A stretch of 64,000 nt of DNA, taken from contig CDMY01000259.1 in NCBI GenBank assembly GCA_001179505.1, positions 82,090 through 146,089 of the forward strand. Direction: 5' to 3'. Position numbers and translations under genes: made by a program. This DNA is from Vitrella brassicaformis CCMP3155. Lineage: Eukaryota > Protista > Chromerida. Shown here piece by piece: positions 19,336 to 64,000 of the stretch (within the stretch, counting starts at the first letter, position 1; every line of letters starts with the position of its first letter). The notes under the pieces are model-generated. The model searched no databases and was not told the origin of the DNA. It was given only the letters and a program-made list of their open reading frames with translations.

Positions 19336-19760
19336 GGAAAAATGACGATAGCTGGACGTCGACAGGGTGGACGGACCAATCTGAAGAGTCCATCCACCAA
19401 TCGAGATCGATCCACTTAGCCATCCAGCACCAAAACACCAAAACAGCTCTGTTTGTAGGTTTGTATGTGGGTGTGCATGCCATGCAAGTAGGTATGTAAG
19501 AAAACGCACCACGGTATCGCTCTTGGACCCGCCTACACAGACAGACACGAAGCCACTCACACGCACACACACATGCACACATATACACATGCACACACAC
19601 GCATGTCTGTCAGTCAGAAGGTAGACAGACGCGACACACACGCCCAGCCCAAATCCCGACCGCCATGAGCCAAAATGCTCGCACCACATACACACAGAAC
19701 ACACAAAGGAGACTGCCACCGTACCGTGTTAGAGGGGTGGTTTGATTTGGACCGGTCATG

Positions 19761-33364: not shown

Positions 33365-33841
33365 TGCATGCTCCGGCCGGCATCGATCAGGCGGTGTGAG
33401 AGGGTCCCCGATGAGCCAGACTGGCGATTGAATTATGCAAGTCGAGGTTCAGATCGTGATGAGACAGGAGTCCTTACGAGACACAGATACATATCTGCAT
33501 GTCCCCCCTTGGGCTAATATGACCTAGGATTACGGGACCTACCTACTGTATATAGTACGATTCTCTGCTATATGCAACAGGGACCTGTTTTGAGTCTGCC
33601 GGACAATTCACATCTATGTGTGTATGTCTCTTTTTTGTACCCACCGATGTGAGGGCGTTTTTTGACATCCATGGCCAATTGCATGAATCGTGCACGAAGG
33701 AAGGAAGGAAGAGACACGGATATGTGGGGAACTTTGGAACTTTTTGATGCCGCTGTCGCGAGGCAGAAGATCGATCATCGCTAATAAAGGTGGCTGAAAG
33801 GCACACGAGTGAGTGTCCGTCTGCATGACGAGAGGGACACA
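33365..33841 (-). repeat. Dispersed repeat R, copy 2 (inverted, segments in permuted order)
   Basis: 33594-33841 is the reverse complement of 19100-19335 with small indels; 33365-33386 is the reverse complement of 19069-19090. Confidence 0.9.
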
Positions 33842-34092
33842 GATGACGAAACAAAGTAGGCAACGATTCAGTTTGAGAGAGAATCTCGCGCAGGCTCTTT
33901 CTGCATACCCCTTCGGGGGGCCGGGGTGGCAAGGTCCCCGTGAGGTGAATGAACGAACAGTCAGCGTCAGCAGACACAGACCCCCATCGCCACACACTGA
34001 CTGAGCTGGAATAAGCGCCGTACGCTAGCAATGACGCACTAGAGGAATGACCAAAAGTAACGAGCTTGCGGCGAGATTTGCGGGAATTCTCG

Positions 34093-42213: not shown

Positions 42214-44587
42214 ATGGCAGCGGCAGCGGCTGCAGGGAGTGCGGCTGAGAAACGGAAGCGACCAAGTCCTGGTGGTGGGGCTGAGGATGAGTGCGGCAAT
42301 CTGGATGAGAGCATCGCACACTGCCAGCAGCTCTTGGACGCGCTGCAGGAGATCAAGAATGACCTCATGCAGCAAGAGCGGGCCATTGGCGGGACGGCAG
42401 ATACCAGCGAGCCATCTGTAAGCAGGCAGAAATGGAGGAAAAGGCACGGCTTAAGTCACATGCACTGTTCGCGTGCCTTCCTCTTTGTGCTGTCGTCATC
42501 AGGCCGAGTGCATGCGTGAGATCTTGGCCTTCAACGTGGGCGGCGACACGACCGTCAAGGCTCGGCGGTCCACTCTGTGCGCCGTCAAGGGCACCGTGAT
42601 GGCACTCCTGTTCTCGGGCCGCTTCGACGCGGGATTCAGACGGGACAGCAACAACCGCATCTTCCTCCAGCTGTTTCCGGATGCTTTTACGTGGTGGGCA
42701 GACACAGCATGACTGGGGCAGGGCGTGGATCTCACACTGCCCCTCTGAGTGTGTGCGTGCGCTTTGTTTTTCAGGTTGGTAGGGCAGCTGCTCACATATG
42801 TCGGCGAGCAGACAATCGATAGCATCGTCATACCAGATTCCAGACGAAACGACACGCCGTTCAAGTAAGCCACACCGACAGGCAGACAGACAGACAGATA
42901 TACAGACGGCCGCGCGAGTTGTTGTGGTTGACATGTTGTGATGTGGCTGGTGTCTGTCAGGTATTGGGTAGAGTTGTTGATGTCGGACCCCGGCTACAAG
43001 CGCCGTGCGAGCCGTGTGCAGATCCCCCCCCTCACACAAGACCAGCAGGAGGAGCAGCAGCAGGGAGCGGGCGGCGAGCAGCAGCAGCAGCAGCAGCAGA
43101 GAGATGCTGAGGACCTCTCTGTAGAGCTGACGAGTATGATCAGGAGGGCCAAGGCTGACAGGGATGCCCAGATGGAGCGCCTCCAGGCCATCAGGCCGCT
43201 GCTCAAGACTGGCAACGTAGAGGACGATGCGGTGAGGTGAACAGAGATGGGCAGAGGAAGGCCAACTCGATGACGCGCTCTGTGCGTCATTTCCATGTTG
43301 GCAGTTGGTGTCGATTGAGGTGTCTGGTGCCGTCGTGACGGTGACCAAGGGCGTTGCCACTTCGCTCGGTGACGACTCCACCTTCGCAAACATATTCCTC
43401 AAGTGAGCAGCTGCCGTCACCGCACGCACACACAGACATCTCCACTGGATGCGATGCTGTCTGCGCGTGTGTCAGGTATGACCGCAGTAGTCATGAGGTA
43501 GATCCAGCGTACGTGCGGCGCATCGTGGACGCGGTGGCACGTGCCCACATGATGGGTGTGGCCGTCAAGGCGCTCGATGTGCAGGGGGCGGTGGGGGAGC
43601 TGGCCATCAAGGGATACCGACACGCACTCACAATGTAAAAACGGTGTGCGCACACAAGGCTGCTCAGCACACAAGGCCAGGCCTTGACGCCTCTTCTGTG
43701 TCTGAATGTGTGTTAGGTACGGTTTGGATAGCGATCGCTATTTGGGCCCTGTCGACGGGCTCCTCAAGCTGGAGCACCTGCAGAAGATGCGGCAGTGGTG
43801 TGAGGACGAGGAGGAGGACCCTCCTGCCATTCCCTCCCACTTGGGCGAGCCGCTCATCCGCATATACAAGTGAGGAAGAAGACCGAAGCAACTGCCAGCA
43901 TGACGGTCATCTCTCACTCTGCCTCTATGTGTCGTGTCAGGGCGACTGTGGATGGGTGGAAGTGGTTGGATTTCCTGGAGGCCGTCAAGGGCCACTCCCC
44001 TCTGCTGCTCATCTCCAAGGTCGACGCCACCACCGAGCTGTTCGCCATCATCATCGACGGGCCCATCGAGGTCGCGGGGGCGGCCGAGACCGAGCACGAC
44101 ACGAGAGCGCACGCCTTCAAGCTGCAGGGGACCGACAGCCACCCATACGTGGGCTACATGGGCTGGCGGAGCAACATGTACATCGCGGGCACACAGGTGG
44201 GTACTCATTCGAATGAGCGATTCAGGCAGGCGGTCATGGTGATGGTCTGCTCTCCATCCGTGTGTGCAGGAGAGAGTCACCCAGACCATCGATTTGTCTT
44301 CACCCGCCTCCGACGCGCCGGCCGTCCTTGTCACCGCATGTTTCGATTTCGGCATCCGACCGGCCGCCCAGCAGATCGGTGCCCCAGCAGCGGCCAGCGA
44401 CGAGACCATGAAGCGCTGCCAGGGGTACATTCTGGAGCACGACCAGCCCGACGTGTGGCTCCAGTGGCAGCGGCCGAGTGTGAGGCCGGGCCACCACGGC
44501 TGGGACGATGATAGCGTGTACCAGTGGTGTTCAGTGAAGGGGTTTCACTTCAACCTGTCCGACTTGGAGGCATACAAACTGGGGTGA
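42214..44587 (+). CDS. KCTD-type BTB plus TLDc-like domain protein
   Basis: BTB-like FNVGGDTTVKARRSTLCAVKGTVMALLFSGRFDAGFRRDSNNRIFLQLFPDAF; TLDc-like LIRIY|KATVDGWKWLDFLEAVKGHSPLLLISK and C-terminal FNLSDLEAYKLG*. Confidence 0.7.
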
Positions 44588-44768
44588 GGATGGGGGCCCT
44601 AGCCGTCCTGTTTGTACAGTGCAGTGCAGTGCAGTGCACAGACCGTGATACGCAATGGTTGCGTGAATGAGTCGATTCACACCCCAAAGAAGTCGAGTCA
44701 CATGAATAAGTCTTCATCTTTCATTGCCGCCACATAAAAGCACCCCGCGTTTGACACGCGCCCCTGAG

Positions 44769-45868
44769 CTAGCTACGACGACCACTCTCAGCCATCTTAT
44801 TGCGCCAGAGAGATACGCCCGTGGCAGCCAACTTCAGCGGCCCATTGCTCACGCCATCTCTGCTGGCGTGGCACAGCTCGGGCGGCAGCATCTCCAGCTC
44901 CTCGCACCGCAGGCCACCAACACCCTCACACAAATCCTTCACACCTTCGAGGCTCAACGCAAACGGCGGCCCGCCCTGACGCACGCAACGCACAGCACAC
45001 AAATGGGGAGTGTGACTTGAATGGCATATCTCTCTCATGTGTCACCTACCTCCTTGTTGCAGATAGCGAAGATGGCGACCATCAGCAGCCCGCTGTCCTT
45101 AAGCAGCGAGTGCATGCGCTTCGCCCACGCATCCTGACACAGACACACAATAAGCATCGGGCAGCCGTCCAAGCAGGTGTGCATTTCTCACTCTCATGTC
45201 TGGGTGAATAGCGCAGAGGAACGTGTAGTCGAGTATGAAGTCCACCACCCCACCCATCCACGTCAGGTCAGAAGCCACCTCAGGTATATCGAGGCCAATC
45301 ACCTCTAGTGGCGGGTCAGACAGCCCGCCCATGTCATGCCCACGACCTGAATGAATGAGTGAGTGAATGAGTGTGTGTAAGGCACCACACCAGCGTATGT
45401 GTCAGCTGCTTGTGTGCGAGAGTATGCTGACCGCATCCCGACACGAGTGCCTCTGCGTTAAAGACCACACCGTCGGCCACATACTTGACCAACACGTGTC
45501 GGGCGCCACAACGAGCCGCCCTCTGCAAGCAAGCCAAACAGACGGACGGACAGATCATCACGTCATGTAACAAAATGAATTTCATTGAGTGAATCAGTCC
45601 CCCACCTCCCATAATGTTCCATCGCGATGGCGTTGTCAGCGGCCTTGCCTTGGTCGCCGCCGCCTCTCAGTCGGGCCAGATCAGGCAGCAGGACGGCAGC
45701 ATGCTGATGTGTCGCCCTGGTCCGTCTTCGGAACGATGGGCGGGGGACGGGCTCGTGTGGGCGGCTGGCCGATGGCGGGAGGCCGGGCGATGACTGTGGT
45801 GAGATGGAGATGGATGCGCCATTTGCGAGCAGGACGGACGCCGTGGCTGGCAGAGATAACAGCTTCAT
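44769..45868 (-). CDS. Thiol/halide (TPMT/HOL-family) SAM methyltransferase, possibly degenerate, with N-terminal leader
   Basis: ALVSGC|GRGHD...VIGLDI...VDFILDYTFLCAIHPDMR|DAWAKRMHSLLKDSGLLMVAIFAICNKE|GGPPFALS, matching HOL-type motifs. The spacer between GLDI and DFILDY is only 13 aa. Exon 1 joins the enzyme frame only via a shifted acceptor (CAGAG). Confidence 0.8.
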
Positions 45869-45947
45869 TTGACAGATGGCTGACGAGGATGAACCAGGCT
45901 GCGGATCTGCTTGACGAGAGGGCAATGAAACGCACAAGGGGGAAAGG
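45614..45947 (-). repeat. Leader/5'UTR segment duplicated at 63522-63868
   Basis: Near-identical direct repeat. Visible differences include a 3-nt insertion and a 17-nt deletion flanked by CGCCA microhomology in this copy. Confidence 0.95.
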
Positions 45948-45951
45948 AAGC

Positions 45952-45971
45952 AGATCTCTTTCCAGCTCGCA
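45952..45971 (+). promoter_or_regulatory. AGATCT and AGCTCGCA in the methyltransferase/AP2S1 spacer
   Basis: AGATCT 45952-45957, AGCTCGCA 45964-45971. Confidence 0.5.
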
Positions 45972-46047
45972 CTCTGTGAGCGTGGCGAATTCGCTCTACA
46001 CAGAAGCATGGGCGACCAACAACCGAGGGGCCTCTGAGTGAGTGTCG

Positions 46048-46476
46048 ATGATTCGGTTCATCCTGCTGCAGAACCGGCAGGGAAAGACCCGCTTGTCCAA
46101 GTGGTATGTGCCTTTCGATGCTGCCGAGAAGAACAAGCTGGAGAGCGAAATACACCGGGCCGTCGTCACCCGGGACCGCAAGTGGACCAACTTCCTCGAG
46201 TACCGGTCCTACAAGCTCATCTACCGGCAGTACGCCGGGCTGTTCTTCACCTTCTGTGTGGACGTCAACGACAACGAGCTGGCCGTCCTCGAGCTGATCC
46301 ACCTGTTCGTGGAGGTGCTCGACGGCTACTTCGGCAACGTGTGTGAGCTGGACCTGGTCTTCCACTTCGACAAGGTCTACCACGTGCTGGACGAGCTGCT
46401 GCTGGCGGGGGAGGTGTCGGAGACCTCACAGGCCGTCATACTCGAGAAGCTCAGGCTGGTCGACAAGCTGGACTGA
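46048..46476 (+). CDS. AP2S1: AP-2 complex sigma subunit, single exon
   Basis: [20 protein letters not shown]...[24 protein letters not shown]...[34 protein letters not shown]; 142 aa uninterrupted. Confidence 0.95.
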
Positions 46477-47460
46477 ATCATCACGACGGCAGATCAGATG
46501 ACTGAATGAATGATGGCTGGGTGGGCGCAGGGCTGCTCTGCTTGCGTGTGGAAAAGACTGACTGATGCAGCAGATGGGCTGTTGTTTGGTGTGTTCCGTG
46601 TTTCGCTCATCAGCTGTCGACCAGCATTGGCCGAAGCGCTTGTGACGCCGAGTACGCTTCTCTCGGTCGAAAAGGCGTCTCGTACGTCGCAGAGTGGGTT
46701 GGCAAATTCAGGTCGATAGCAGCGAGGTGCGATTAATCGAGAGAGTGCGTGTCCCTGTCTGTGAAATGAAGACGGAAAAGGTGTGTGCTGGGAACCCTTG
46801 TGAATGATGGCTGAGCGTTGTTGCGACCGTCAGTAGATGGGCAGCATCGTGGAGGTACCAAATGCGTTCTTCATCTGTATGAATCAGTCGGACACTAAGT
46901 CAGTCACCAGCCGGCAGCACGTCCACACACTTCCCCCCACACACACACACACACACACGGGGAGAGAGAGAGAGAGAGAGGTCCATTCCATTCATGTCGG
47001 CCAGCAGCAAGGCTCAAAAACTCAGGCACATCGTTCGTTCGTCACATCGACAGAGTGCGACAGAGACACCACCGAGTGAGCTACGAGGGAAAAGGGCCGC
47101 CTGCCTGCCTACCGAGAGAGCTAACCACAACGACACACACACATCCACACACACACTGCCTACCTACCTACCCACCTGATTGACACTGGACGAGCGCATT
47201 CCGCGACGTCCGTCGTCAGCTTTCCTTGAGCAAAAAAAGAACCCTTCCCGACACCCACGACAAGAGAGAGACCACAGGAAACCACAAGGAGAGAAATCAC
47301 GCACCCTCACACCGCCACACCGCACCCACATGTGCCCGATAACGTGAAAAACTCATGCCTGTGTGCCTGGCTGGCTGTTGGTGTCAGCAAATGGGTTGGT
47401 GGTGCCATGCAGTCACTCTACGGACGGACGTACGAAGGCAATCAGCGAGTGTGTGTGAGT

Positions 47461-48123
47461 CTAGTAGAGGTTGTCGGCCTTCTCGAGCTTGACGATCTTC
47501 TCGGCAATGCCCTTCTGCAGCGTCGAGCGGATCTCGTCGTTGATGAACGAGAACGTCTGCATCACACACGTACACACAGACAGCACATCAAGTCCACTGC
47601 ACCGATGCCACCATTCTCCCCCCCTCTCTGCGCCTGTGTGTCTGTGTCGCTTTCTAACTGACCTGTGCGGCAAACTTGGCGACATTGTCTGGTCTGAGGC
47701 AGTAGGCGTTGGAGGATCCCGGGGGGTTCTTAAGGCAGCTCTCGTTCCAGCCGTCGGGGGGGCAGGACACCACTGGGAAGACAGAGTGGTAGGAGGCCGT
47801 CCCGGAGAGCGCGTCGGTGCCGCCCGCACAGCCCACAATCAGCATCGGCTCGATGGAGCGGTTGTAGTACTCCAGGGCCTGCTCCAACTTGCTCGGCTGC
47901 ACACACACACACACACACGGAACAGAGAGAGAGGGAAAGGTGCCATCGATGGATGTGTGTGTGTGTTGTGTTGCGTAGTGTGTTGAGTACACACCTGTTT
48001 GTGTGCGGAGCAGATGCGAATGTGCGAGGGGACGCCGAACTTGGTGAGGTTGTCCTGGATCTTCTGCAGGTGCGGCATGTCCGAGTCGCTGCCCGCAAAG
48101 ATGCCCACACAGCAACTGAATCA

Positions 48124-48157
<34 letters not shown>

Positions 48158-49494
48158 GTGAGGACAGTACGTGTGGTGTGGTGTGGTGTGGTGTGGTGTG
48201 TTGGCCACAAACGTCGCACCCCTTGATGAGTTTCTTTGAGACCAGGTTCATGAGCAGTCTCTTGGGCGGCGTGAGGGGGGAGGCCGGGAACTCAAAGGTC
48301 TGCCCGGTGATTCTCTCGAACACATTGATGTACCGATACACACACTCAACCACCTGACACACACACACACACATCCATCCATCCAGCCATCCCTTGCTTT
48401 GCTGTGCTGTGTTTGTGTTTGTGTGGGTCTGTCTGACCTGTTCCTCTGTGAGTGTGGGGACCGCCTTGCCGGGTTTGAAGCCCTGCTCGAGCAGCACGTC
48501 CCTCACGTACTGCTTGGAGAACTCCTTCACCTTGAGCTCCGGCCTGGCGGCCAGCAGCTCGCTGACATCCTTGTACTGCCCGCCCTTCATGGCCTCGACG
48601 ATCTGCGGCCACTTGGTCTCGAGCTCCTTGGCGTCGCACAGGCGGCTGCTGTCGGGCGTGTTGACCTCGTCAATGACGTGCAGCTTGCCGCTCTCGTCGG
48701 TGCCGAACTCGTACTTGGTGTCGATGAGCACGAGGCCGCGCTTGGCGGCCAGCTCCTGGCCTCTGGCGAAGAGCTTGAGGGAGATGTCCTTGGCCTGCTG
48801 CGCCAGGTCCTTGCCGATGAGGGCCTCCACCTCTTGGTAGGTCATGTTCTCGTCGTGGCCGACCTCTGCCTTGGTGGTGGGGGTGAAGATGGGCGTGGGG
48901 AACTGCTGGAAGCGCAGAAGGCCGTTCTGGACGGGGAGGCCGCAGAAGGTGCGCTCGCCCTTCTCGTATGCGGCGGCCATGCTGCCCCAGAGGTAGCCGC
49001 GGACGATGCACTCGACGTTGAGGTTCTTCATCTTCTTCTGGATGACCACATTGGGGTCGGCGTCGTCGGTCACCAGGGCGTTGGGGATGATGTCAGACGT
49101 GTTCTCGAACGCCCAGCGAGTGATCTTGTTCAACAACTGACCCTGCAAGCAAGCAATCAATCACACACACACACACACACACACAGACGCACACACACAG
49201 ACGCACACACATGGATGGATGGATGGATGAGTGCGCCATCCCTCCCTCCCTCGCCGCCTCTCAACGCTGTGCTGTCCTGCGTACCTTGAAAGGGATGAGG
49301 TTTGGCAGGACGTAGTCGAACGCCGAGACCCTGTCGCTGGCGACCATGAAGACGTTCTTGTCGGTCATGTAGATATCCCGCACCTTGCCCTTCTTGACAC
49401 GACCCAGCTCGGGCAGCAGGCAGTCGTCCAGCGTGTAGCCCAGGTGCTGGCGGATCTTGCTCTTCGTGTCAGACTCAGTCATGACGTGGCCCAT
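47461..49494 (-). CDS. PAICS: Bifunctional SAICAR synthetase (PurC)-AIR carboxylase (class II PurE-like), PAICS architecture
   Basis: PurC: [20 protein letters not shown]|[49 protein letters not shown]. PurE: [20 protein letters not shown]|[20 protein letters not shown]. Confidence 0.96.
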
Positions 49495-49864
49495 TGCTTT
49501 GCTTGACGGACGATGGAACGACGGGAGAGAGGCGACTGGCGGATTAGCTGCTGCGACAAAGGCGAGAACTCACGAGCGCTGAGTGGCGATGGATGAGCAG
49601 GTGGCTGAGCTGGAATGGAGGAAAAGGGAGGGCAGTTTTCGGGGAGACGGCGTCGCATGCGATCCAAGCTCGCATTTTGAGCTCGCAGACGGTGGCGACA
49701 GCAGAAGAGGCCAGGAGACAACGGCAGAGTGCTGCGTGGGCCAGGCTCAGCAGCAAGCTTTGACGAACTCATAGATCAGCCTGTTTGTGCGCCGTTCGAG
49801 GCGGCCAATTCATTGCTCTCGGTGTTGTGAAGGCGTTGGTTGCGTCGGTTCGGTTCGTCCGGTG
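49495..49864. promoter_or_regulatory. 370-bp shared divergent promoter of the PAICS-like gene and PFAS
   Basis: Lies between opposed ATGs; contains the palindrome TCGCATGCGA (49653-49662) and AGCTCGCA at 49667 and 49680. Confidence 0.7.
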
Positions 49865-52800
49865 ATGGGCATAGAGTTCATGGGATCTGACGATGCGCCT
49901 TCGATGAGCGGATCTCCCGCCATCCTGCACTACTACCGCACACCCGGGCTGTCCGAGTACAAGCGGCAGGGCCTCCTGCAGGAGGTCAGAACAGACATCG
50001 CAAGCGATGTGGTGAGCCGCTGAGCCACTCACAGACAGCAGATGGGTCGTGCATTGCCCACACCACCACCTGCCCCTGCTTTTGTGTGTGTCTGCATCAC
50101 TCCGTAGGAGTCGCTGGACACCGAGGTGTGTTACAACGTGGAGGTGACTGCCCCCCTGACGGCCAAGGAGGAGGATGCCCTCACGTACCTCCTTAGCGAG
50201 ACCTTCGAGCAGCAGCAGTTCGGCAGCAAGTCGTTCCTGAGGGAGCTGCATGCCTCGAGGGGCGGCAAGGGCGGCATCCTAGAGGTGGGGCCGCGGATGA
50301 CCTTCTGCACTGCATGGTCGTCCAATGCAGTGGCCATCTGCCACAGCTGCGGACTCACCAAGGTCTGTCTGCCAGAGGCGCACAGAGGATGAGAGGGGAG
50401 GGGATTGTTCCTCTCTCTCGTGTGTGTGTGTGTGCAGGTGACCCGCATCGAGCGCAGCCGACGTTATCTGTTCGCCTTTGGGAAGGCGAGCGACCCCACG
50501 ACCAATGTGCAAGGTCCGGTCCGCAGAGGCATCCGATCCATCGATTTGTGTACGGATCTGTGTGTGTGGATTGTGTTGTGTTGTGTTTCGCCGCATGGGT
50601 CATCAGACTTCCTGCAGGAGGTGGCGCCCAAGGTGCACGACCGCATGACCGAGTGCGTCTACCCTTTCCCCATCACCTCGTTCGAACTCAAAATCAAAGT
50701 CAGCACACACACACACACACACACACAATCTGACAGTATTTGTGTATCTGTTGTGTGCTGTGTCGTGTGCAGCCGGAGCATTGGGTGTCTGTCGACGTGA
50801 TGGGCAAGGGCCGTGCCGCCCTCGAGGCCATCAACAAGGAAATGGGCCTCGGATACGACGAACAGGTCACACACACACAAACACACACACACTCAGAGGC
50901 ACCCACCCCAGACACCCGCTCGTTCATTCGGCCATGGCCCCCCACTGTGTTGTGTGTGCCTTGCAGGATTTGGACTACTACACTCGTCTGTTTCGTGACG
51001 AGCTGAAGCGCAACCCCACGTCGATCGAGTGCTTCGACCTGGCCCAGGGCAACAGTGAGCACAGCCGCCACTGGTTCTTCAACGGCAAGCTCGTCATCGA
51101 CGGCCAGGACATGCCCGAGACGCTCTTCCAGCTCGTCAAGAAACCCTTCAAGATAAACCCCAGATTTAGGTGGGCTGATCTCTGTCGTCCATCGGTGTGT
51201 CTGTGTGACACTCGTTCATTCATTCATTTCGTGGATGGATGCAGCACTGTCGCCTTTCGCGACAACTCGTCGGCGCTTCGCGGCTACGTCCACCAGAACG
51301 TGCACCCATCGCCTGATGTCGACGGCAAGGCCGCGCCCTACAAAGTATGTCTGCCTGCCTGCCACATACAAAGACAGGCATCATCAATTCGCGCATGCGC
51401 ACGTGTGTCTGTCTGTGTGTGTGTGTGTGCCCATCCATCCATGCATCGGTGGATCAGTCTGTGACGAAGGACTACGACCTGACCTTCACGGCAGAGACGC
51501 ACAACTTCCCATGCGGCGTGGCGCCCTTTCCCGGAGCTGAGACCGGCACTGGCGGGCGATTGCGGGACGGGGCAGCCACAGGCCAGGGGTCACTCATCAT
51601 CGCCGGCACGGCGGCATACTGTGTGGGGGCACTGAGAATCCCTGGGTGGGTGAGCGGGACAAAGAGGGAGGGAGGGGGGGTGAGGGGGGCATGTGTGGAT
51701 GGATCGACGTGTGTGTGGGTGATTGGAGTGGTGCAGGTATGACATGGAGTGGGAGGACTCGGCCCGTGAGTGGAGCTACCCGTCAAACATGGCGGACCCA
51801 TTCGATATTCTCATCGAGGTCACACACACACACACACACACTCTCACTGATGACGACTCGACTCACACGTGCGTGTCTCTGAAGCTGCTGTGTCTCTGCG
51901 TCTGCGTGTGTTGCGGTGGTGCAGGCGTCGAACGGTGCGTCCGACTACGGCAACAAGTTTGGCGAGCCCATCATCCAGGGCTACACACGCTCCTTCGGAC
52001 TCAGACTGCCGGACGGAGAACGGTACTCACACACACGCACACACGTGCCCACACACACAACCCGCTCATGTGTGTGTGTGTGTGTGCTGGTGCACTCATG
52101 TGCCGTGTCGTACGACGCAGTCGTGAGTGGATCAAGCCCATCATGTTCACGGGCGGCATCGGGCAGATGGACCACCGACACATCAACAAGGGAGACGCCG
52201 AGAAGGACATGAAGATCGTCAAGATCGGCGGACCCGCATACAGAATCGGTACACACGCACACACACCCATACACAGGCACTCATCGGTCCTCCTTGTGCG
52301 GTGTGTCCACAGGGATGGGTGGCGGGGCGGCCTCATCGATGGTTGCCGGCGACAACCAGGCCGATCTCGACTTCAATGCCGTCCAGCGAGGAGACGCTGA
52401 AATGGAAAACAGGGTACACAACACACACACAAACAGCACACAAGGATAACCCCCAACCAGCGTGGTAATACCTTCCTGCATGGTGTGGTATCAGGCCAAT
52501 CGTGTGATCCGTGCGTGTGTGGAGCTGGGCGAGGCAAACCCCGTTGTCTCGATCCACGACCAGGGCGCGGGCGGCAGCGGCAACGTCCTCAAAGAAATCA
52601 CCGAACCGGGCGGCGGGTTCATCGGTCAGCGACATTCCCTCCCTCCCTCCCTCCCTCCCCCTCTCCCACACACCCCTACACAAAGGGCACTTTCGCTCTC
52701 ACTTCCAATCAGACATTCGGAAGATGTTGTGTGGCGACAAGACCATGTCGTTGCTGGAGCTGTGGGGGGCCGAGTACCAGGAGAACTACGCGCTTCTCAT

Positions 52801-55800
52801 CCGCCCCGAGTCGGTGGAGCTGTTCGACACCCTCTGCAAACGTGAGAAGGCCCCGTACAGCGTCGTTGGGCACATCACTGGTACACTCACACTGACTGCC
52901 CCAATCCTTTCTCCGTCCATCTCATCTCCATCGCTCTATTGTTCTCTGTGTGGGTGTGGGTGTGTGTAGGCGATGGGATCGTGCGTGTGTGGGATGCCGA
53001 GGACGGCACAACACCAGTCGACCTGCCTCTGGAGAAGGTGCTGGGCAAGATGCCACAGAAGGTCTTCAAGAGCGACAGAAAACAGTCCATCAGCAGACCA
53101 CTACAGGTCAGCACGACAGACAGGCAATGAGAGGCAGGCGGGCTGTCATGTGTGTACGTGGGTCGGTCGGTCGGTCGGTTGTGTGTTTGTTGTGTGCAGT
53201 TCCCGGCTGATGTGACGGTCATGAGTGCGCTTGACCGTGTGTTGCGGCTCAGCTCCGTGGGGTCGAAGCGGTTCCTCACCAACAAAGTCGACCGGTCCGT
53301 CACGGGCCTCATCGCACAACAGCAGTGCGTCGGGCCGCTGCAGGTACCACCTCACACAATCACAGACATACACATGGATGGATCCCTGCTGTGTGTCGGT
53401 ATCCGGCCGTCGACAGTTGACTCTCTCCGATGTGGCAGTGGTTGCCCAGAGCCATCTCGGCACGACAGGTGGCGCGACGGCCATCGGCGAGCAGCCCATC
53501 AAGGGCTTCCTCGACTGTGCCGCCATGGGCCGGCTGGCATGCGCTGAGGCGCTGACTAACCTCGTGTGGGCCAAGGTGACGGCTATCGAGGACGTCAAGG
53601 CATCGGGCAACTGGATGTGGGCCGCAAAGGTCAGATCAGAGAGAGGGGAGGGGAACGATTTCTTTCAACGGCTGCACTGCATCTGTGTGTGGTGGGTGTG
53701 TATGGAATGCATGTGTGTGAGTAGATGGAGGGCGAGGCGGCGAATATGTACGACGCTGCCAAGGCCCTCTCGGACTTCATGATTCAGATCGGCATGGCCA
53801 TCGATGGAGGCAAAGACAGGTCAGCCAACCCCACACCAACCCACCCCCCATACACACCCCCTGCTGCCTCCTTTCAGTCTGTCCATGGCCGCGCGCGACC
53901 CCATAGCGAAGGAGACGGTCAAGGCCCCCGGCGAGCTGACGATATCGGTGTATGCGCCGTGCCCCGACGTCAACCTGACCGTCATGCCCGACCTCAAGTG
54001 CGGCGGTGATGGTGTGCTGCTGCTGATCGACCTGGACCTGAGGGGCTGGTGTCTGGGCGGCAGCAGCCTCGCCCACTGCTACGGACAGATCGGCGACCAA
54101 TGCCCTGACGTCGATGTGAGTGGGGGAGGCCACAGACGGGAGAGGACATGGGGGAGAGAGAGTGGTCTGCGGCTGTCTGCAGGCTGCATCGCTGAAGAAC
54201 GCCTTCAACGCGGTGCAGGAGCTGATTAAGAAGCGGCTCATCACCGCGGGCCACGACAGATCTGACGGCGGGCTGATCACCACAGGTGTGCACCCGCAAC
54301 AGACAAGCACTCAACATCGCACACACGTGACAGCCCTCCCTGTGGTGTGTCGTCGCAGTGCTGGAGATGGCCTTCGGCGGCAACTGTGGCGTCACCATCG
54401 CACTCGACAGCCTCCCGGCATCGGTCGACTTCCTCCACGCCCTCTTCAGCGAGGGACCCGGGCTCGTCTTTGAGTGCGCCAAGGCCAACGAGGCGGCTGT
54501 GCGTGAGGTGCTGCAATGGCACGGTATGGGCGCGGCGAGTGTGCATGCGATTGGGGGAGGGAGAAACGACACCAAAGTCGAGGTAGGTTGAGAAAAAGAG
54601 ATGCGGGGGGTGCCTTGTCATGGTGCGGTGTGATGTGGTGTGATGTGGTGTGTGCAGGTGTCCGTGGGTGGCAAGGTGCTGCTGTCCGATGACGTGAGGC
54701 AGCTGCGGGACATCTGGGAGGCCACCAGCTTCCAGTGCGAACTCAGACAGGTAGGTGATAACCGACACACACCACACGAGAGCCTCTGTTCATTCATTCA
54801 CCTGTGTTTCCTTATCATCTCTGCAGTGCAACCCCGAGTGTGTGGCTCAGGAGCGTGACGGCCTCAAGCACCGCACAGCCCCGCCCTTCAAGCTGACCTT
54901 CGACTTCCACCCCACCTCTGACGCCAAGCTCACTCAGGCCGACAAGATCAAGGTCGCCATCATCCGGGAGGAAGGCAGCAACGGCGACAGAGAGGTAGGA
55001 ACCACAGACACACAAGTGTCCGCCCGCCCCACAGACAGACACACGCACACACACGTGTGCCTGTTTGTCTGTGTGTCTGTGTGTCTGGTAGATGGCGACG
55101 GCCTTCCACATGGCAGGCTTCGAGGCGTGGGACGTGACCATGACCGACATCAGCAGCGGGCGCGTCAACCTGCAGGACTTCAGGGGCGTCGTCTTTGTGG
55201 GCGGCTTCAGCTACGCCGACGTGCTCGACAGCGCCAAGGGGTGGGCGGCCACCATCCTGCTCAGCGACAAGCTCAACGGGGAGTTCGAGGCCTTCTACAA
55301 GAGGAACGACACCTTCTCTTTGGGCGTCTGCAACGGTAGGTACTCCAGCCATCAGGCTGGCTGGCTGGCTGGCTGGCTGGCAAGTAGTCGGTCGGTCAGT
55401 TCTGCCACCTGTTTGTTTGTGCGTGTGTGTGGCTTCAGGGTGCCAGCTGATGGCCCTCTTGGGGTGGGTGCCCGGACTTGAGAAGAACATCCCACGCGAC
55501 AAGCAGCCAAGGTGGGCGGCGATCGCGATCGCTCTACTCACACGTGACCTGTTGTTCCCTCTCTGTCTGTCTGTCAGGTTCATTCACAACGCCAGCGGCC
55601 GCTTCGAGTCGCGATGGTCGGCCGTGCGCGTGGAGTCGAGCACATCCATCATGCTGCAAGGTATGAAGCACACACGCCCATCTATCCACCCACACCTCCG
55701 CGGCTCCCTGTTTGACTGACGTCATGTCATGTGCGTGTCTACTAGGCATGGAGGGCTCTACTCTCGGCATCTGGGTGGCCCACGGTGAGGGCCAGGCCTA

Positions 55801-56125
55801 TTTCCCCGACCCTAGTGTGCTCACACAGTGCCAGCGGGACCGAGCCATCCCCCTCACATACGTCGACGACCAGAACCAGCCCACCGAGGCGTACCCCTTC
55901 AACCCCAATGGCTCACCGCAAGGCATCGTCGGCCTCTGCAGCCCTGACGGCCGCCACCTGGCTCTCATGCCGCACCCGGAGCGGTGCATCCTCACCTACC
56001 AGTGGCCGTACGCGCCGCAAGGGTGGACCAAACAGCACAGGGAGGGGGAGCTGTGGGGCCGGCACGTGGCACCCTGGATCAAGATGTTCCAGAATGCACG
56101 ACAGTGGTGCGAGAGAAATGCCTAG
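49865..56125 (+). CDS. PFAS: Phosphoribosylformylglycinamidine synthase (large PurL)
   Basis: [142 protein letters not shown]|CQ, MPHPER. Confidence 0.98.
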
Positions 56126-56636
56126 TGAGTGGCTGGGTCTGTCGGTGGCTAGCGAGGTGGATGCGTCAGTCGGGCGGCTGCCTGACTGTCTCGTGTGTGC
56201 GTGATGACTGGCTTGTCTTTTTCCCTCTGTCACTCACTCTTCTGTCTGTGTGGTGTGAATCATATCATGCTGGCCGATCGACCAATGTGGTCATTTTTTG
56301 AATGTCGTCCGTCGTGTGGCGTGATCGATCGTGTCCGTCGGTCCGTCCCGAGAGAGTGCGTGGCGATCGAGTAAGGCCCTCTGGATCTCGCGAGCAGTGG
56401 CGGGATCCATAGGACAGTTTTCGTGTTTGTTTATGTGTGTGTGACAGTCAGTCAGCTATGTCTCTGTCTGTGTGCAGCGACCGATCGCCCACTGAATACG
56501 TAGACGTACACACAATCGCAATCAATCGGCATTTCCCGCGACGAACACACAAGCTGATTGTCACACGTCCCCACTCACAAGCAATTGCTAGCGAGCGACT
56601 TGAAGCAATCAATCGAGTACGTGTGAGTCGAGAGAG

Positions 56637-57846
56637 ATGGTGAGCGGTGACGTGGAGAGCCAGACGCCCCTCATCGGGCAGCGCGGCCAGCTGGTGACCA
56701 AGGACATCGAAGTGGACATTCGCAGAGACTTCATCCTCAAGGTAGGTTAGCCACGTGTCGATAGATGTCTCACAACAGCTGACTGAGCGTGACTTGCCTT
56801 GTCCTTGTTTGTGTCTCCTTGATCAGGTGTATGGGATACTCGCCACGCAGATCATCCTCACCGTCCTCGTCGCGCTGCCCTTCGTACTCGTCGACGCCGT
56901 CCAGAGTGACATGAGACAGAGAGACAGAGAGAGAGAGAGAGAGACAAGGACACCGTCTTGTCTGACTCGTCTGTGTGTCTGTGTGTGTGTCTCGGTGCAT
57001 GCAGCGTTTGTGCGCGACAACTCGGGCCTGATTGGCTTTGTGACCATCCTGAGTGTGTTCGGCTTCCTCATAACCTTTTCGCTGAAGCCCGAATCGATCA
57101 AAACGCACCCCTACGGCCTACTCGTGAGCCGCGGGCAGCGAGACACACAACAAAGACATTGCTCTCATCTCTCTGTTGGTTGCAGACGCTGTTTGGCTTC
57201 ACTGTCGTGGAGGGGGTCTTCATCGGAACGCTGTGTGTGTTCCTGACGCCCTCGAGCGTGCTCTTCACCGTGGGTGTGTGTGTGGTGATCGTCGGATCGC
57301 TGACGGCCTGGGCGGTCTTCGCCAAAGCCGACTTCACAGGTACACACACGGCGACATATATGTGACATACACACCCAACCACACACACGCAATGTCTTGT
57401 TGCAGGGTACGCGCCGTTCGTCTACGTGGCGGGGCTGGTGTTTGTGTTGTTCCTCATCGCCGGCCTCCTCTTGATGCCATTCCTGCCTGGCGTACGCACA
57501 ACTCAGACAAGACACAGAGGCCACACACATGTGACTCGCTGCGTGTGTGTCTCTGTGTGCAGGTGTCGGTCTTCAACATGGTCATCTCAGCGTTGTTGGT
57601 GCTGTTCTTCTCGGCCTACCTGGTCATCGACACGCAGGCCATATTGGGCGGCCAACACAAGTATCAGTTCACAGTGGACGACTACGTCTTCGCCGCACTG
57701 GTGAGCCCCACCCCCAACACGCGCAGTGACACACACGGCAATCAGTGTGTCGTTCGTTTTGTGTCGTGTTGGTCGTGTAGGCGATTTACCTCGACATCGT
57801 CAACATGCTGATCCAGCTGCTCTCAGCATTCGGACAGCGCAAGTGA
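56637..57846 (+). CDS. TMBIM/Bax-inhibitor-1 family (LFG-type) multi-pass membrane protein
   Basis: IRRDFILK|VYGILATQIILT, HPYGLL, SAYLVIDTQAILGG, DDYVFAAL|AIYLDIVNM; about seven hydrophobic segments. Confidence 0.93.
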
Positions 57847-58232
57847 GAGCAAGGCCGACAAACAAGAGGGGACAAAGGAAGGACAGCCACACAAGACTGA
57901 CTGACTGACTGACGACGTGTAAGAGAGATCAACGGCTAACAGACTTCTCGACTGATTGATGGATGCATTCACATTCAAGTCACTGATGTGATGGGGTGAA
58001 CACATCGTAATTCATTCAATGTCATTGTACGTTGTTGACACATTCGAAAAAAGCGCTGTGCTGCGTGTCTGAGGGAGGTGCACATTCGGATGGCACGGCC
58101 ACTCACTGTCATTCACCCATCCACACGACAAATGTCTATCTCGTCGAGTGTTCGGCACATCATGCAGTGTAAATAAGGTACACAGACACATCCGTCGATC
58201 CATCGATGTCTGTCTATGGCATTGTCAGTCGA

Positions 58233-59644
58233 TTAGAGGTAGACGGAGAGGTGGTTGGGCCACGGCTTCCTCTTCATGGCCTTGCGCTTGATCTCCCCGT
58301 ACTTGTCGTTCCACTCCCACATGCGCTCCAACTCACGACCACTCTGATTGATCACACAAACACACAACACATCCATGCATCCATGCATCCATCCATCCAA
58401 TACAGAGCACAATCTATACCACGCAACGAACGCCCCACACCTATTTGCTTGACGTGATGTCGTGTGTGTCAGTCACCTGGTTGACGGATGCCGAGAGTTT
58501 CTTCATGGCTTGTTTGAGGTCGTCGGCGGTGACGGGCCGCAGCTCAGTGGGGCTCGCGATGGCCTGGTCGCCCATCACCCCAGAGGCAGGGGCCGATGGC
58601 ACGTTGCCCTCCTTTCTGAGGTGGGACTCGAGCTGGCGGGCCTGCTCATGGCTGATCTTGGTCACGCCATCGCGACACACTTCCTTGATGTCACTACCTG
58701 CAATGGATGACAGACACGTAGGCCGAGGCCACTCAGACGTGTGATGCGATGCAGTGTGGCGGTCTGTTCCTCTCTGTCTGCTGAGAGACTGACGGACCGG
58801 TGTAGCCCTCCATCTGAAGCGCGAGGTCGGTGACGTTGACGTCAGGCGCCAGGCGGTTGTTGCTCAGGGTCACCTGCACACACACCCAGCGAATCGACAC
58901 ACGCAACGGAGTCCATCCATTCCATCCTGCCCACTCACTCATTCACCCACTCACCCTGAGTATCTCCTCCCTGGTCTTGTTGTCGGGCAGGTCCACCAGG
59001 ATGCGCCGCGGCATCCGACGCAGCACGGCCTCATCCAACGCAAACGGCCGGTTCGTCGAACCTGAACAAAAGCAAAGACCCATTCGACACACACCAGCTG
59101 CTGCCGGTGAGGTGCGAATGGCGGCGTGTGTTGTGTTGTGTTGTGTTGTGTTGTGTGCGCACCGATCACAACGACCCGGTCTCTTGTGGTCCTGAGGCCG
59201 TCCCACTCCTGCATGAGGGTGGTCTTGAGGCTGGTCAGCGTGCCGTGGGTCGTGTCGTCGCCGCGATCGCGGCTGCTCAGCAGAGAATCAACCTGACAAA
59301 ACATTACACCACACACATCGTGGCTGGCCATCCAGATGGCTGCAAATATAGGATAGGCATGGGTGGGTGCGTGTGTGTGTGTGTGTCCCTCCTGCGCTCA
59401 ACACCAGCCCCCACAACCTTAAGAAGGGGGCAAGTGTGCGATCGACAGGGGGTCGGCTCAGGTCCGTGTGGCACGACAACGAGCAAAACTCAAAAGGAAT
59501 GCAGTCAACCGCTTCTGAGCTCTCTGTTAGCGTGCTGCCCATCTGGTGTCTGTCTGTCTGTCTGGGTGGTGAGTGTGTCGCATTGACCTCGTCCAGGAAG
59601 ATGACGCAGGGCGCCAGCTTTCTCGCGAGCGTGAACACAGCCTG

Positions 59645-59690
<46 letters not shown>

Positions 59691-62600
59691 GCAGAGAGAG
59701 AGAGAGACGTTGAGCCTTCTGTGTTGTGTGCCCCTTCTCACTCTCTCTGTCTGTGTGGACGTACCTTTGCCATTTTCTCTGATTCTCCGAGCCACATGTT
59801 CTCGACAGATGATGCGTCGACCGACAGGAAAGTGGCCCCTCCCTCCGTCGCCACAGCCTTGGCCAACATGGTCTTGCCCGTGCCTGGCGGGCCGCTGATC
59901 CAAGACACAAAAGAGGCATCGTGTTTGGGGGTCGCTCTGTGCAGTGGTGTGTGTGTGTCTGTGTGTGTGTGTGTCTCACAAGAGCAGCACGCCCTTGACG
60001 GCTTCCTCAGCGATGCCCTCCTGGTAGAGGTGGGGGTACTTGAGCTGCAGTTGAAACAACACCCACGCCACATCGCACCAGTTGATTCACATCGGATAAC
60101 CATAACCACAACCAGCCAGCCTCTAGCTAGAGTCATATGAATGTAGGTAGACGCACCGGGTAAGTGATGCATTCCCTCAAGAGCTCCTTGACCTCCTCCA
60201 GCCCCCCGATCTGGTCGTACGTCACGTGAATGTCTTGCGGAGACACCACGTTGGCCACCAAAGACTGCGCAGCACACGGAACGGGCACACGAAGACAGCC
60301 AGCAATGGTCATCGATCTGATCCGCCTCTTCGTGTCTGTGCTTCTCGTGTGCGTGGCGGTCCGTGCGCACTTTTTCGTGCTTGTTGCTGGCGAGGCTGGC
60401 AACCTCCTCACGACTGCGCACCACAGGCTCGCCCGGACGAGGAACCACACCCTGAGAGCAACAAGCACCACATCGATACGTATACGATCGGTGTGTGGTG
60501 GGGGGGCAGTTCGATGTAATAAATACCTCTTCCATCAGGGCCGACTCGAGGCTTCTGGGGCTGACGTCACGCAGCCGCGCCATCATCTGGGAAGAGGAGG
60601 AGGATGGAGACGCTGACGTGTCGCCAGGCCCATGTCTTATTGGCTGTGGCTGTGTCACCGCGGCCCCCATCCGCTTGAAGGGCGAACCCCCGCCCTCGCC
60701 CTCAGATGAGAACCCTATGGCGCTGTCGAAGACGCCTCCGGCCTGCTTGCTGACCTGTGGGGGATACACACACATGGGTGATGATAAGTGTGGGGTTTGG
60801 TGGCCGACTGACCTCTGTCTTGAGGGCTGCTGACAGGATTGCCTTTGTTTGGTCTGAGTCGAGCAGTGACTTGGAGAGCAGCGGCCGGAGGGACTCTAGG
60901 TTGGGGCAGGTGAGACCGTTTAGCTCCATTGTCGCCTGGTGGGCCGACACACACACACACACACACACACAGAGGAGAGATCATATGCAGACGTACCGGT
61001 AGAACAACTGTCTGTGTGTGAAGGTTGGTGACCTGACCTTGAGCAGCAGCTCGTTGCACCGCCAGATGTGCATTCCGCGGTCGGCTTCCACCCATCTGCA
61101 TGGATGACATGCAGCCACAGGCAGAACGGGTCCGAGTACACTGACTGCCTTTGAGAGCACACACACATATGGCCATGCGCACCTGTTCCACCTCTCCTTC
61201 ATGACGGCATCGCGCGGCGGGCGGATGTCGACATTGTCGAGCTTGTCCAGCAAGACCTTGGCCTCTGCGCTGTTGACCAGCTTCTGCTCCTCGTCCTCGA
61301 CGACTTCCCTGTCCACACACACACACACACATCCATCCATCCATCCACACACAGAAATAACCGCCTCTCCCTCTCCCTCTGGCTCTCTCTTCCAGTCCCC
61401 CCTGCCCCTTCCGTCTCTCACTTTTCCTCTGTCTGAGTGTCTTCTTCGGTCCTCTGCGGCCATGGCGGCTGCATGCCGCCGAAGGGGAAGCCTCCCTGCT
61501 GTCGGTGGTGCACGGGCAGCACCTGGATGGAGATGTGCTTGATGGCGGGGTCCTGCCGCAGCTGGTCCCGCAGGAACTTTTCCACCTGCTGAGGGTCCTT
61601 GCCGATGAGGCCGCCGAGGAACTGGCCGAGGAACTCAATGCAGCCGGGAGGCACGTTCTGGGGGATGGATGGCATGGGGGTGTGGCCCGCTCCCTCCTCG
61701 TCGGATGTGTGCTGCTCGTCGTCGATCCCTGGAGTGGGGGCTCCCTGCTCCTGCATCTTGGCTTCCATGAAGTCGCGCATCATCTGTTGGATCGCCTGGC
61801 CGATCCACACACAACACATGACGGAAACACGAATCGGCCACAGACATCGTCCCTCACACACATATAAGCGTACCTGTGGCGGCGGCAGTGATGGGTCCCA
61901 CGACCCTCCAAGCGACACCGAGAATCGAGGCGACGGCGAGTCCTCCCTCTTGCCCTTACCATCCCTATCCCTCCTCGACTCCTTCCCCTGCTGCCGCTGC
62001 TGCTGCTGCTGTGGTTGTTGCTGCTGGTCACCAAACCGATGCGGCATACCGAACAGCCCACCAAGTCCGCCACCCGGATAAGCGCCCTGCTCAGGGATAA
62101 TCCGGCTGAAGTAGACATTGACGCGTCGCTGGCCCTGCCCCGGCGCCAGCTGAGCTGACAGATCGCTGGCGAGCAGCCCGGAAGTGCTCGAGGGAGGGGG
62201 GGAAGAGGCCGATGATGCCGGTGAGGGGTCAGCCGCCTCTGCGCCAGCTGCGCCGGCGGGTGGGTGGAGGGCGGGGTCGTCAGCCCCGATGAGGACGAAA
62301 AACACCCGGGAAAGCCGGTTGGTGAGCTCGTTGACCAGCAGCTTGCATGACTCGGCTGACCTCAGTACCGACCGGCCGCGATCACGCAGCACCACCAGAA
62401 ACGGGGGGTCTGACAAATACGCAATCCCATCTGTATGTGTGTGTTTTGGGGAGGGAGAAGGCGCACTTACGGACCTCGGCTTGGTGCTTTCGTCTCTTCT
62501 AGTAGAGCGTTGATGGCCTGGTAAGTGGTGATGGTCTCGCGGTTGATCTTGAGGCTGGCCGCGGCCTCGTCGATGACCGATCGGATGGACTTGTCGTCAA

Positions 62601-63790
62601 CCAACACAATCCGCGAACCTGACACGACACACATCGACACGCATGACAGGTACGTCCGAGGCCTGCATGGCATGGATTGCGTGTGCTGGTTTCTGACCGA
62701 CAGACCTGTGGAGTGCCCGAGGGCTACGGCTAAGACATCCAGCATGGAGTGCGTTGCTCCAGAAGAGGACAACCGGACACCGCCACTCAATCTGCACAGT
62801 ATGTGAACGACAGACACCAGCACCATAAAGAGACCGCTGGCCGCTGCCATGCCCTTCTCTCTCTCACACACACCCACCCAGGCAGATGGTAGAGGTCGGC
62901 AGTGACTTCGGGCGTGTGGCTGAGCTTCACCCCGCCCCACAGCTGCTGTAACGTGCCCCGCTCGATGAGTGTCTTCTGGCCCAGCAGGCCATTCCGGTGA
63001 TGGAACTCGAAGAAGAACCGCCGCAGCAGGGAGGACGAGAAACCCACGGTGTTTGATGACGGTGACGGTGATGGTGCTAGTGGCGATGAGCTGGCGTCTT
63101 CCTGGAAAGGCGTCATGTCCGCATTCACCAAGGAATCTACTCACAAGCCAGACACCGGGACAATGCATGAAGGTCTGTCTGTAGATCTCACTCCCCTCTC
63201 TCTGTGTGTGTAGGCCAGGCCCAGCCCACCTCACCGGATTCGAACTGCAGCTGGCCGATGTCGAGTGCGCTGGCGCCCAGAGCAGTCAGCTTGTCACGGG
63301 GCAGCGGACTCGACACACGTTTCCTCCACCCTTCCCGCAACTTCTGGAGCACCTTCTGATGCACCTTGGCGTAGTTACTCGGCCCCTCCTCGCCGTCAGG
63401 CTTGTCTGCATCGTCATCTCCACCTCCCCCTCCCTCACTTCGACTCTGGCCTGGGCTAACAGCTTCGGTGGGTACTGGCTGTGGCGATGGGTCCGCATTG
63501 ACCACGCCGAAACGCCTGGCGATGTTCCATCGCGATGGCGCCGTGCTGTCAGTGGCGTTGTCAGCGGCCTTGCCTTGGTCGCTGCCGCCTCTCAGTCGGG
63601 CCAGATCAGGCAGCAGGACGGCAGCATGCTGTGTCGCCCTGGTCCGTCTTCGGAACGATGGGCGGGGGACGGGCTCGTGTGGGCGGCTGGACAGTGCGGG
63701 GAGGCCGGGCGATGACTCTGATGAGATGGAGATGGATGCGCCGTTTGCGAGCAGGACGGACGCCGTGGCTGGCAGAGATAACAGCTTCAT
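58233..63790 (-). CDS. AAA+ ATPase of the Msp1/ATAD1-spastin group with long N-terminal region (plant-type C-terminus)
   Basis: [40 protein letters not shown]|[36 protein letters not shown]|GSDIKEVC, C-terminal [10 protein letters not shown]; start at ATG 63790 (MKLLSLPAT...). Confidence 0.93.
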
Positions 63791-63868
63791 TTGACAGATG
63801 GCTGACGACGATGAACCAGGCTGTGGATCTGCTCGACGGAGGGCAATGAAACGCACAAGGGGGAAAGG
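63522..63868 (-). repeat. Leader/5'UTR segment duplicated at 45614-45947
   Basis: Encodes [23 protein letters not shown]...[19 protein letters not shown] plus ~80 nt upstream. Confidence 0.95.
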
Positions 63869-64000
63869 TTGGTTGGTTAAGGGTTTGACGAGACACCTGT
63901 CCCTAAGCCCGGCGCTACCTTCCGGCGCAACCAGGCATCTTCTCTGTCCACAGCACACACCAAACAGGCAACAGGCACATGCAGAATGCATGCACAAGGC

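Follow-up and report, generated by a model that had tools for sequence, protein, structure and literature searches.

A leader shared by an AAA+ ATPase gene and a methyltransferase locus of Vitrella brassicaformis: a probable templated copy that overwrote a gene start out of frame

Two genes in a 64,000-nt stretch of the genome of Vitrella brassicaformis CCMP3155 (scaffold C259:82090-146089; this whole stretch is hereafter referred to as the window) carry nearly the same leader sequence at their 5' ends: an AAA+ ATPase gene, and a locus with the remains of a TPMT/HOL-like methyltransferase. A sequence-only reading of the window had proposed that the leader, which encodes a hydrophobic start, a Ser/Pro/Arg-rich stretch, and the pentapeptide RLRGG, is a portable bipartite targeting cassette with a deubiquitinase-type processing site, moved by recent exon shuffling from the methyltransferase family. 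The complex red plastid that this proposal called upon is indeed present: Vitrella is a chromerid alga whose plastid is of that kind and imports proteins by means of a signal peptide and a transit peptide (PMC6668581). The leader itself, however, is better explained otherwise. We consider it likely that a ca. 361-bp templated copy of the 5' end of the AAA gene overwrote the start of the methyltransferase gene out of frame, and that RLRGG is a chance motif that was copied with it. The genome searched comprises 72,700,666 bp in 1064 scaffolds (PMC4501334), and the GC content of the window is 58.9%.

The repeat consists of two direct copies ca. 18 kb apart, both on the minus strand:

45614-45974, minus strand: copy A, 27 nt longer upstream than the 45614-45947 given earlier, with its ATG at 45868
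63522-63868, minus strand: copy B, 79 nt of 5' leader and the first ca. 87-89 codons, with its ATG at 63790

The ca. 340 bp of shared sequence reported earlier were confirmed by the sequence itself, in which the copies align between 45947/63868 and 45614/63522, and by blastn (320 nt at 95.0% identity, E 7e-142). The true length is ca. 361 nt, the 5' limit of copy A being 45974 and the last 27 nt of copy B lying on scaffold C324; for the sequence beyond 45974, no second copy was found. Common to both are ca. 79 nt 5' of the ATG and ca. 87-89 codons, RLRGG included. A column-by-column comparison revealed 12 substitutions and three indels of 1, 3, and 17 nt. Copy A has 1 extra nt at 45917 and 3 extra nt at 45707-45709 (an added His codon); copy B has 17 extra nt at 63541-63557, and beyond this indel the two copies read in different frames. 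The 5' untranslated region (UTR) and the coding part have diverged equally (3/78, or 3.8%, and 9/252, or 3.6%), and two of the nine coding changes are synonymous and seven nonsynonymous. The divergence therefore looks neutral-like, with at least one leader copy drifting.

A count of leader carriers in the genome had been suggested as a check on the cassette proposal. By DNA search and six-frame protein search of the whole 72.7 Mb, the number is two. The shared leader is one sequence present twice, not a family, and a portable cassette finds no support in it: the only two copies are related by descent, and an exhaustive phmmer search of copy B exon 1 against 1.84 billion representative proteins returned 0 hits. 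A word-index search for relatives of the leader or of AAA exon 1 also gave 0 hits. A scan of metagenome and transcriptome contigs with the leader and methyltransferase exon 3 yielded no match, which carries little weight as the collection may omit Vitrella, and an exact-product look-up of four unspliced open reading frames (ORFs) around both copies found no record in collections that may likewise omit it.

Copy B apparently stands in its native place, in a gene with the following further parts:

63239-63521, minus strand: unique rest of AAA exon 1, an orphan sequence, acidic and Gly-rich, then helical-looking
58250-60320, minus strand: AAA+ ATPase domain exons (Pfam AAA, E 1.2e-11), with the Walker A exon at ca. 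59741-59905

The Walker A exon is most similar to Cdc48/p97 D2 and AFG2 (PDB sequence hits, E down to 8e-23), and the gene carrying copy B is a classic-clade AAA+ ATPase. The copy B ORF stays in frame past the end of the repeat, for 200 codons in all, to a GGTGAG donor near 63240. A codon-usage log-odds score, trained on the transcript-proven AP-sigma and PurC-PurE genes, placed the leader frame first among the six, by a margin comparable to those of the Walker A exon and of methyltransferase exon 5, which belong to low-bias genes (GC content at third codon positions of ca. 0.7). The unique part of AAA exon 1 also scored best in the AAA frame. The codon usage of the leader is as expected of a coding exon that sits natively in the AAA gene, and it is this resemblance to bona fide low-bias exons, together with the 200-codon in-frame ORF, that makes copy B look native.

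The other locus can be compared with the single paralogue that it has in the genome, designated P (scaffold C644:23827-26934, locus L010). The features needed for the comparison are as follows:

45522-45432, 45346-45192, 45133-45050, and 44975-44769, minus strand: remaining exons of TPMT/HOL-like methyltransferase copy A
45523-45605, minus strand: intron 1 of methyltransferase copy A, 83 nt, GC 0.45, ending in CAG, with a second AG 2 nt on
45606-45623, minus strand: recombination junction, defined by three-way alignment of A, B, and P and by blastn of A against P

The methyltransferase gene, which had been drawn down to 43500, spans 44769-45606. P aligns with window positions 43721-45623 at ca. 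74-81% identity, and the alignment includes intron 1, which is homologous in the two, and the exon-1 donor GAG/GTGGGG. Exon 1 of P is an ORF of its own, with 70 codons whose product starts hydrophobic and continues with a basic stretch. Its end, in phase 0, encodes Phe-Trp-Glu, with the first Trp of the TPMT domain, and exon 2 begins in phase 0 after a CAG acceptor. No similarity was found between P exon 1 and the leader at the protein level (BLASTP E 2.5), and a local DNA alignment of the leader with P exon 1 plus 450 nt upstream was no better than shuffled sequence (z ca. 0). Since even the neutral introns of A and P remain alignable (64-85% identical), a homologous exon 1 would be detectable. 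The possibility that the leader is a diverged homologue of P exon 1 was ruled out on these two comparisons.

At the junction, A and B share the sequence GATGGAACAT, and P has GACGGAGCAT in the same place, with 8 of 10 positions matching. After GATGGAACAT, copy A continues with 8 nt of native, P-homologous methyltransferase exon-1 tail, up to the GAG/GTGGGG donor. The homology of P to A ends where the identity of A and B starts, at ca. 45623. On this alignment, the copy A locus is evidently a chimera whose 5' part is B-like and whose 3' part is P-like, and this would make the methyltransferase family the recipient of the leader and not, as had been suggested, its donor. The divergence between A and P is much the greater (synonymous divergence, dS, of ca. 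0.28, versus ca. 0.037 between the leader copies), and the A-P split and the copying of the leader would accordingly differ greatly in age.

The recipient appears to have been eroded. Relative to P, deletions of 5 nt and 124 nt remove the W..EWD..PSP block from copy A, and ca. 22 residues after the GLDI motif are missing as well; the frame is open despite both losses. Copy A lacks both the conserved N-terminal Trp-rich block and a complete Rossmann core. In an exon-by-exon search with Pfam TPMT (PF05724, cut-off 26), the best exon of A scored 21.7 bits and its counterpart in P 28.7. P has a 2-nt gap in its last exon relative to copy A (ca. 1250-1290 of L010), which leads to a frame break and an in-frame TGA. 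Both TPMT-like copies of the genome thus carry defects.

Reading frames across the junction were tested by translating spliced models of copy A from the window sequence:

Conserved donor 45605 with CAG acceptor 45523: 131 amino acids (aa), premature stop in exon 3
Native phase-0 frame of copy A exon 1: stop present, ATG absent
ATG 45612 with canonical splicing: stop after about 20-23 codons
Leader ATG with a gAG acceptor 2 nt past the CAG: in frame, 265 aa
Leader ATG with a GTTACA donor (49-nt intron): in frame, 277 aa
Intron retention from ATG 45612: in frame, 208 aa

The imported ORF meets the conserved donor at 45605 in phase 2, while the methyltransferase needs phase 0; if unspliced, it stops at 45563, 51 nt past the end of the repeat. 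When the 17 nt of copy B were put back into copy A, the leader arrived at the donor in phase 1, and was likewise out of frame. The splice sites of the recipient therefore provide no in-frame junction in copy A. The conserved acceptor conforms to local usage: all five introns proven by L011, a spliced transcript contig of the adjacent AP-sigma gene, are 79-139 nt long and end in CAG, and one of these proven acceptors differs little from the acceptor that follows copy A. The peptide SRWNIMG/EGGSLW, which had been read as the original methyltransferase start, corresponds to the ATG-45612 frame spliced at the CAG, and runs into the early stop listed above. A functional fusion of leader and methyltransferase is doubtful, because splicing at the conserved sites does not bring the leader into the TPMT frame. 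Of the recent exon shuffling proposed earlier, the recent duplication of a 5' UTR and first coding segment stands; the working fusion that it implied does not follow.

We propose the following course of events. The leader would be native to a long AAA+ ATPase gene, as its 5' UTR and the opening ca. 89 codons of its exon 1. A piece of ca. 361 bp would have been copied from there to a site ca. 18 kb away, in the same orientation, and the position of the 3' junction in a 10-nt stretch of near identity makes templated break repair or template switching the likely mechanism. The target would have been an older TPMT/HOL-like paralogue, by then already eroded. The piece would have taken the place of its upstream sequence and of its exon 1, except for the final 8 nt ahead of the conserved donor. 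As this donor is reached in phase 2 instead of phase 0, the predicted main product would be the 131-aa nonsense peptide, and the native methyltransferase frame would be left with no start codon. Since then the two leaders would have drifted neutrally, to ca. 4% divergence, and a long interspersed nuclear element (LINE) would later have entered the donor locus at a point 79 nt before the ATG. Copy A would, most likely, be a non-functional chimeric scar.

The proposed copying resembles microhomology-mediated templated insertion, as in microhomology-mediated break-induced replication, fork stalling and template switching, or synthesis-dependent break repair, in that ca. 361 bp were copied in direct orientation from a nearby template and replaced resident sequence, and in that one junction falls in a 10-nt near-identity stretch. 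In our case the mechanism is deduced from the anatomy of the junction, and there is no outgroup for the 5' junction. As the copied piece is free of introns, RNA-templated repair may also have been the route.

Some observations weigh against this course of events. Three non-canonical routes do give an in-frame methyltransferase (265, 277, and 208 aa). In copy A, the methyltransferase exons have stayed open and share one frame, and the ratio of nonsynonymous to synonymous divergence between A and P (dN/dS) is ca. 0.41, which would indicate past constraint; since P has a frame break and the exons of A are open, copy A might be the working methyltransferase. The direction of copying, finally, is a matter of parsimony with the single outgroup P, and the AAA side has no outgroup.

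The first two of these observations also count in favour of a young functional exon-1 shuffle. The gAG acceptor or the alternative donor would then give rise to an in-frame fusion, by which the methyltransferase would be redirected to wherever the AAA protein resides. The frame is kept by two splice variants and by one form with a retained intron, and the gAG route keeps it thanks to the 17-nt deletion in copy A. With P broken, A could be the surviving copy, and a replacement leader could be tolerable, exon 1 of P also being signal-peptide-like and basic. Nevertheless, we regard a functional shuffle as unlikely. The native, conserved acceptor is CAG, and of all acceptor contexts GAG, as present 2 nt further on, is favoured least. 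Use of the alternative donor would create an intron of only 49 nt with a GTT donor, which occurs in none of nine local introns. The substitutions in the leader look neutral, A has lost the N-terminal TPMT block and ca. 22 core residues, and no leader-bearing protein was present in the collections searched. A related reading, that copy A represents the earliest stage of a presequence transfer, with the 17-nt deletion and either the gAG acceptor or the 49-nt intron leading to an in-frame, retargeted methyltransferase, seems to us distinctly improbable.

Acquisition of presequences through exon shuffling or first-exon duplication is known from complex-plastid algae and apicomplexans, and the present case is like it in that a 5' UTR and a signal- or transit-like first coding segment were copied in front of another gene, near its first intron. 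It differs in that the junction lies 8 nt inside the exon and not in the intron, and in that the conserved splice sites do not put the two parts of the fusion into one frame. The gene that received the leader, moreover, is an eroded paralogue.

The opposite direction of copying, with the leader born at the methyltransferase locus and copied to the AAA gene, gains something from the missing outgroup on the AAA side and from the fact that the repeat in A nearly equals exon 1, ending 8 nt before the donor in the manner of an exon-sized unit. It would, however, leave the resumption of A/P homology exactly where A/B identity stops as an unexplained coincidence; P exon 1 is unrelated to the leader, and the leader is out of frame in A but continuous with a 200-codon ORF in B. 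We consider this direction very unlikely.

An assembly artefact, with one copy mis-joined or a collapsed repeat, was also considered, as only 132 nt separate copy B from the end of scaffold C259, and a high-copy element is adjacent to it. The region in question contains the following:

63869-64000, minus strand: element X, the 3' end of a LINE; its tail is (CCAA)n, 79 nt lie between it and the copy B ATG downstream, and it extends to the scaffold end
63859-63868: GGGGGAAAGG, a 10-nt target-site duplication, with the second copy at C324:119636-119645
C324:119593-120050: LINE-linked region of scaffold C324 (loci L037/L041)

Element X is present in at least 41 copies at ca. 100% identity, mainly at scaffold ends and pointing outward, and its flanks vary from site to site; in the window, the edge of homology is at 63867-63869. 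Its minus strand ends in an ORF that belongs to a large and diverse repeat family (at least 57 loci), and a fuller member of this family, L035, has a reverse transcriptase domain (RVT_1, E 1.5e-24) just upstream of the X-like ORF. The element is oriented as the AAA gene; its (CCAA)n tail adjoins 63869, and the (TTGG)n tail is variable among copies. With a reverse transcriptase in the family, a 3' tail, and a target-site duplication, element X is, by its sequence features, the 3' end of a LINE-type retrotransposon. As in LINE target-primed reverse transcription, the family bears a reverse transcriptase, the 3' tail is microsatellite-like, the target-site duplication is 10 nt long, extra nucleotides are found at the 5' junction, and there are many near-identical, scaffold-breaking copies. 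The insertion is not part of the duplication, and only truncates the visible repeat in copy B. It was asked whether X could be a subtelomeric repeat, which was excluded by the change of flanks from one site to the next, the reverse transcriptase in the family, and the target-site duplication. LINE 3' transduction as the mechanism of copying was likewise excluded: copy A has neither X nor its tail, and the repeat continues beyond X.

A mismatch-tolerant pattern search located the other side of the insertion. The end of scaffold C324 consists of LINE 5' sequence and ca. 82 nt of extra junction sequence, followed by GGGGGAAAGG; then come 27 nt that match 45948-45974 with 2 mismatches, and then unrelated sequence. 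The duplication of GGGGGAAAGG and the 27-nt continuation on C324 imply that the LINE inserted within the duplicated segment of B, after the duplication, and this insertion would explain why the scaffold ends there and why the repeat appeared to stop at 63868. On this evidence, C259 and C324 are genome neighbours parted by a recent LINE insertion, and the LINE, with at least 41 near-identical 3' ends, is recently active and breaks many scaffolds. Elsewhere, one copy shows a tandem duplication of the first ca. 176 nt of its 3' end (L026, scaffold C77, 2974-3334), and degenerate telomere-like TTTAGGG repeats lie ca. 25 nt from another insertion of the same LINE (L021, scaffold C722, ca. 300-345).

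The matching target-site duplication and the 27 nt of continued homology on C324 speak against an artefact. The copies, moreover, differ at 12 sites and by 3 indels, the flanks of each are coherent genes, and an independent Logan contig, L012, equals 45822-46967 at 100% identity, A-specific variants and 5' junction included. An artefact, which had been named among the outcomes that would refute the earlier proposal, is scarcely credible. The same contig terminates in a compound (CA)n(GA)n microsatellite.

RLRGG is encoded at 45659-45673 in copy A and at 63584-63598 in copy B, as can be read directly from the sequence and as had been reported. In a six-frame translation of the window it occurs three times versus 0.65 expected; two of the occurrences are the copies, related by descent, and the third, at 57422, is unrelated to them. 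LRGG occurs nine times versus 6.2 expected, and composition predicts ca. 50 RLRGG per 10^7 residues. The pentapeptide is identical to ubiquitin residues 72-76 (LRLRGG being the ubiquitin C-terminus), but the preceding residue in the leader is Ala and not Leu, and it is preceded by no ubiquitin fold or Pfam ubiquitin domain; the 70 residues before the GG are Ser/Pro/Arg-rich low-complexity sequence, and in the 203-aa product of AAA exon 1 Pfam found no ubiquitin or other family at E<=0.1. Residue 70, just after the GG, differs between the copies (Gly versus Ser). The most plausible reading of RLRGG is that of a pentapeptide which arose by chance in a disordered presequence rich in Arg, Gly, and Leu and was carried along with the copying; it is present twice because the segment was copied. 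We give next to no credence to a genuine deubiquitinase-type site in a bipartite plastid-targeting cassette: RLRGG does close a basic, transit-like stretch in both copies, and chromerid plastids have ubiquitin-derived import machinery (PMC5487736), but there is no beta-grasp domain upstream, the frequency of the motif is at chance level, its two occurrences count as one by descent, the residue that follows it has already changed, and in PUBL, the plastid ubiquitin-like protein of Toxoplasma, an isolated RGG directly before the ubiquitin-like domain was left uncleaved and was dispensable (PMC5487736).

The general composition described for the leader was borne out. Its start is mildly hydrophobic, with a 13-residue core that is broken by Pro, Thr, and Ser and reaches a maximal Kyte-Doolittle value of 1.74 over 11 residues. 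Residues 25-70 are transit-like, that is, net positive (+8/-2 in A and +8/-3 in B), hydroxylated (Ser/Thr 15-17%), and poor in acidic residues, with Pro at 15-17% and Arg at 17%. Candidate cleavage sites after residue 15 or 19 precede Asn or Ser, and the first Phe is residue 45, so that neither an aromatic residue nor Leu is found at position +1 of the putative transit peptide. Phe is, however, less conserved in the transit peptides of Vitrella than in those of Chromera (PMC6668581). The leader is like chromerid bipartite plastid signals, which often have Phe at +1, in its short hydrophobic start followed by a +8/-2 Ser/Pro/Arg-rich stretch; it differs from them by the weak, interrupted hydrophobic core and by the absence of an aromatic residue near a plausible cleavage site, and its cargo is an AAA ATPase with an orphan N-terminus. 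Judging by composition, the leader may be an N-terminal sorting signal of the AAA protein.

Several further features surround the two loci:

46048-46476, plus strand: AP-complex sigma subunit gene (Pfam Clat_adaptor_s, E 5.8e-54), head to head with copy A
43870-44511, plus strand: ORF co-duplicated with the methyltransferase (counterpart at L010 75-818, plus strand)
378-876 versus 36521-37036: dispersed duplication
1968-2535 versus 16954-17541 versus 17571-18072: dispersed duplication
19097-19341 versus 33588-33843: dispersed duplication, inverted
1614-1704, 3974-4048, 28500-28574, 46915-46997, 59627-59725, and others: compound (CA)n(GA)n microsatellites

Contig L011, which represents the AP-sigma transcript, matches the window at 100% identity. 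Its first position is 45965, within the duplicated segment; the imported piece is now part of the very short head-to-head intergenic region between AP-sigma and copy A. A long FGAM ORF was sought as a route to merged transcripts, and none was found. The co-duplicated ORF preserves ca. 100 well-conserved residues at ca. 81% nucleotide identity and has no Pfam domain. The further short duplications dispersed in the window are 0.25-0.6 kb long and 82-89% identical; segmental copying at this locus seems to be frequent. The compound microsatellites recur in the window and are frequently intronic. An Rfam scan of window positions 43-64 kb gave no match.

We conclude that the shared leader probably reflects an ordinary young segmental duplication, whose result is a chimeric and probably dead gene start. 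The finding is mainly corrective: the leader provides no evidence for a mobile targeting cassette or for ubiquitin-type processing in chromerid plastid import. It also bears on the assembly, in that C259 and C324 are neighbours, split by a recent LINE in the 5' region of the AAA gene. At the same time, this is a cleanly resolved case in which both parents can be identified, and it illustrates the raw material from which leader shuffling could arise. Should the locus after all represent the earliest stage of a presequence transfer, it would be a dated and mechanistically resolved example of the spread of a targeting leader in a complex-plastid alga.

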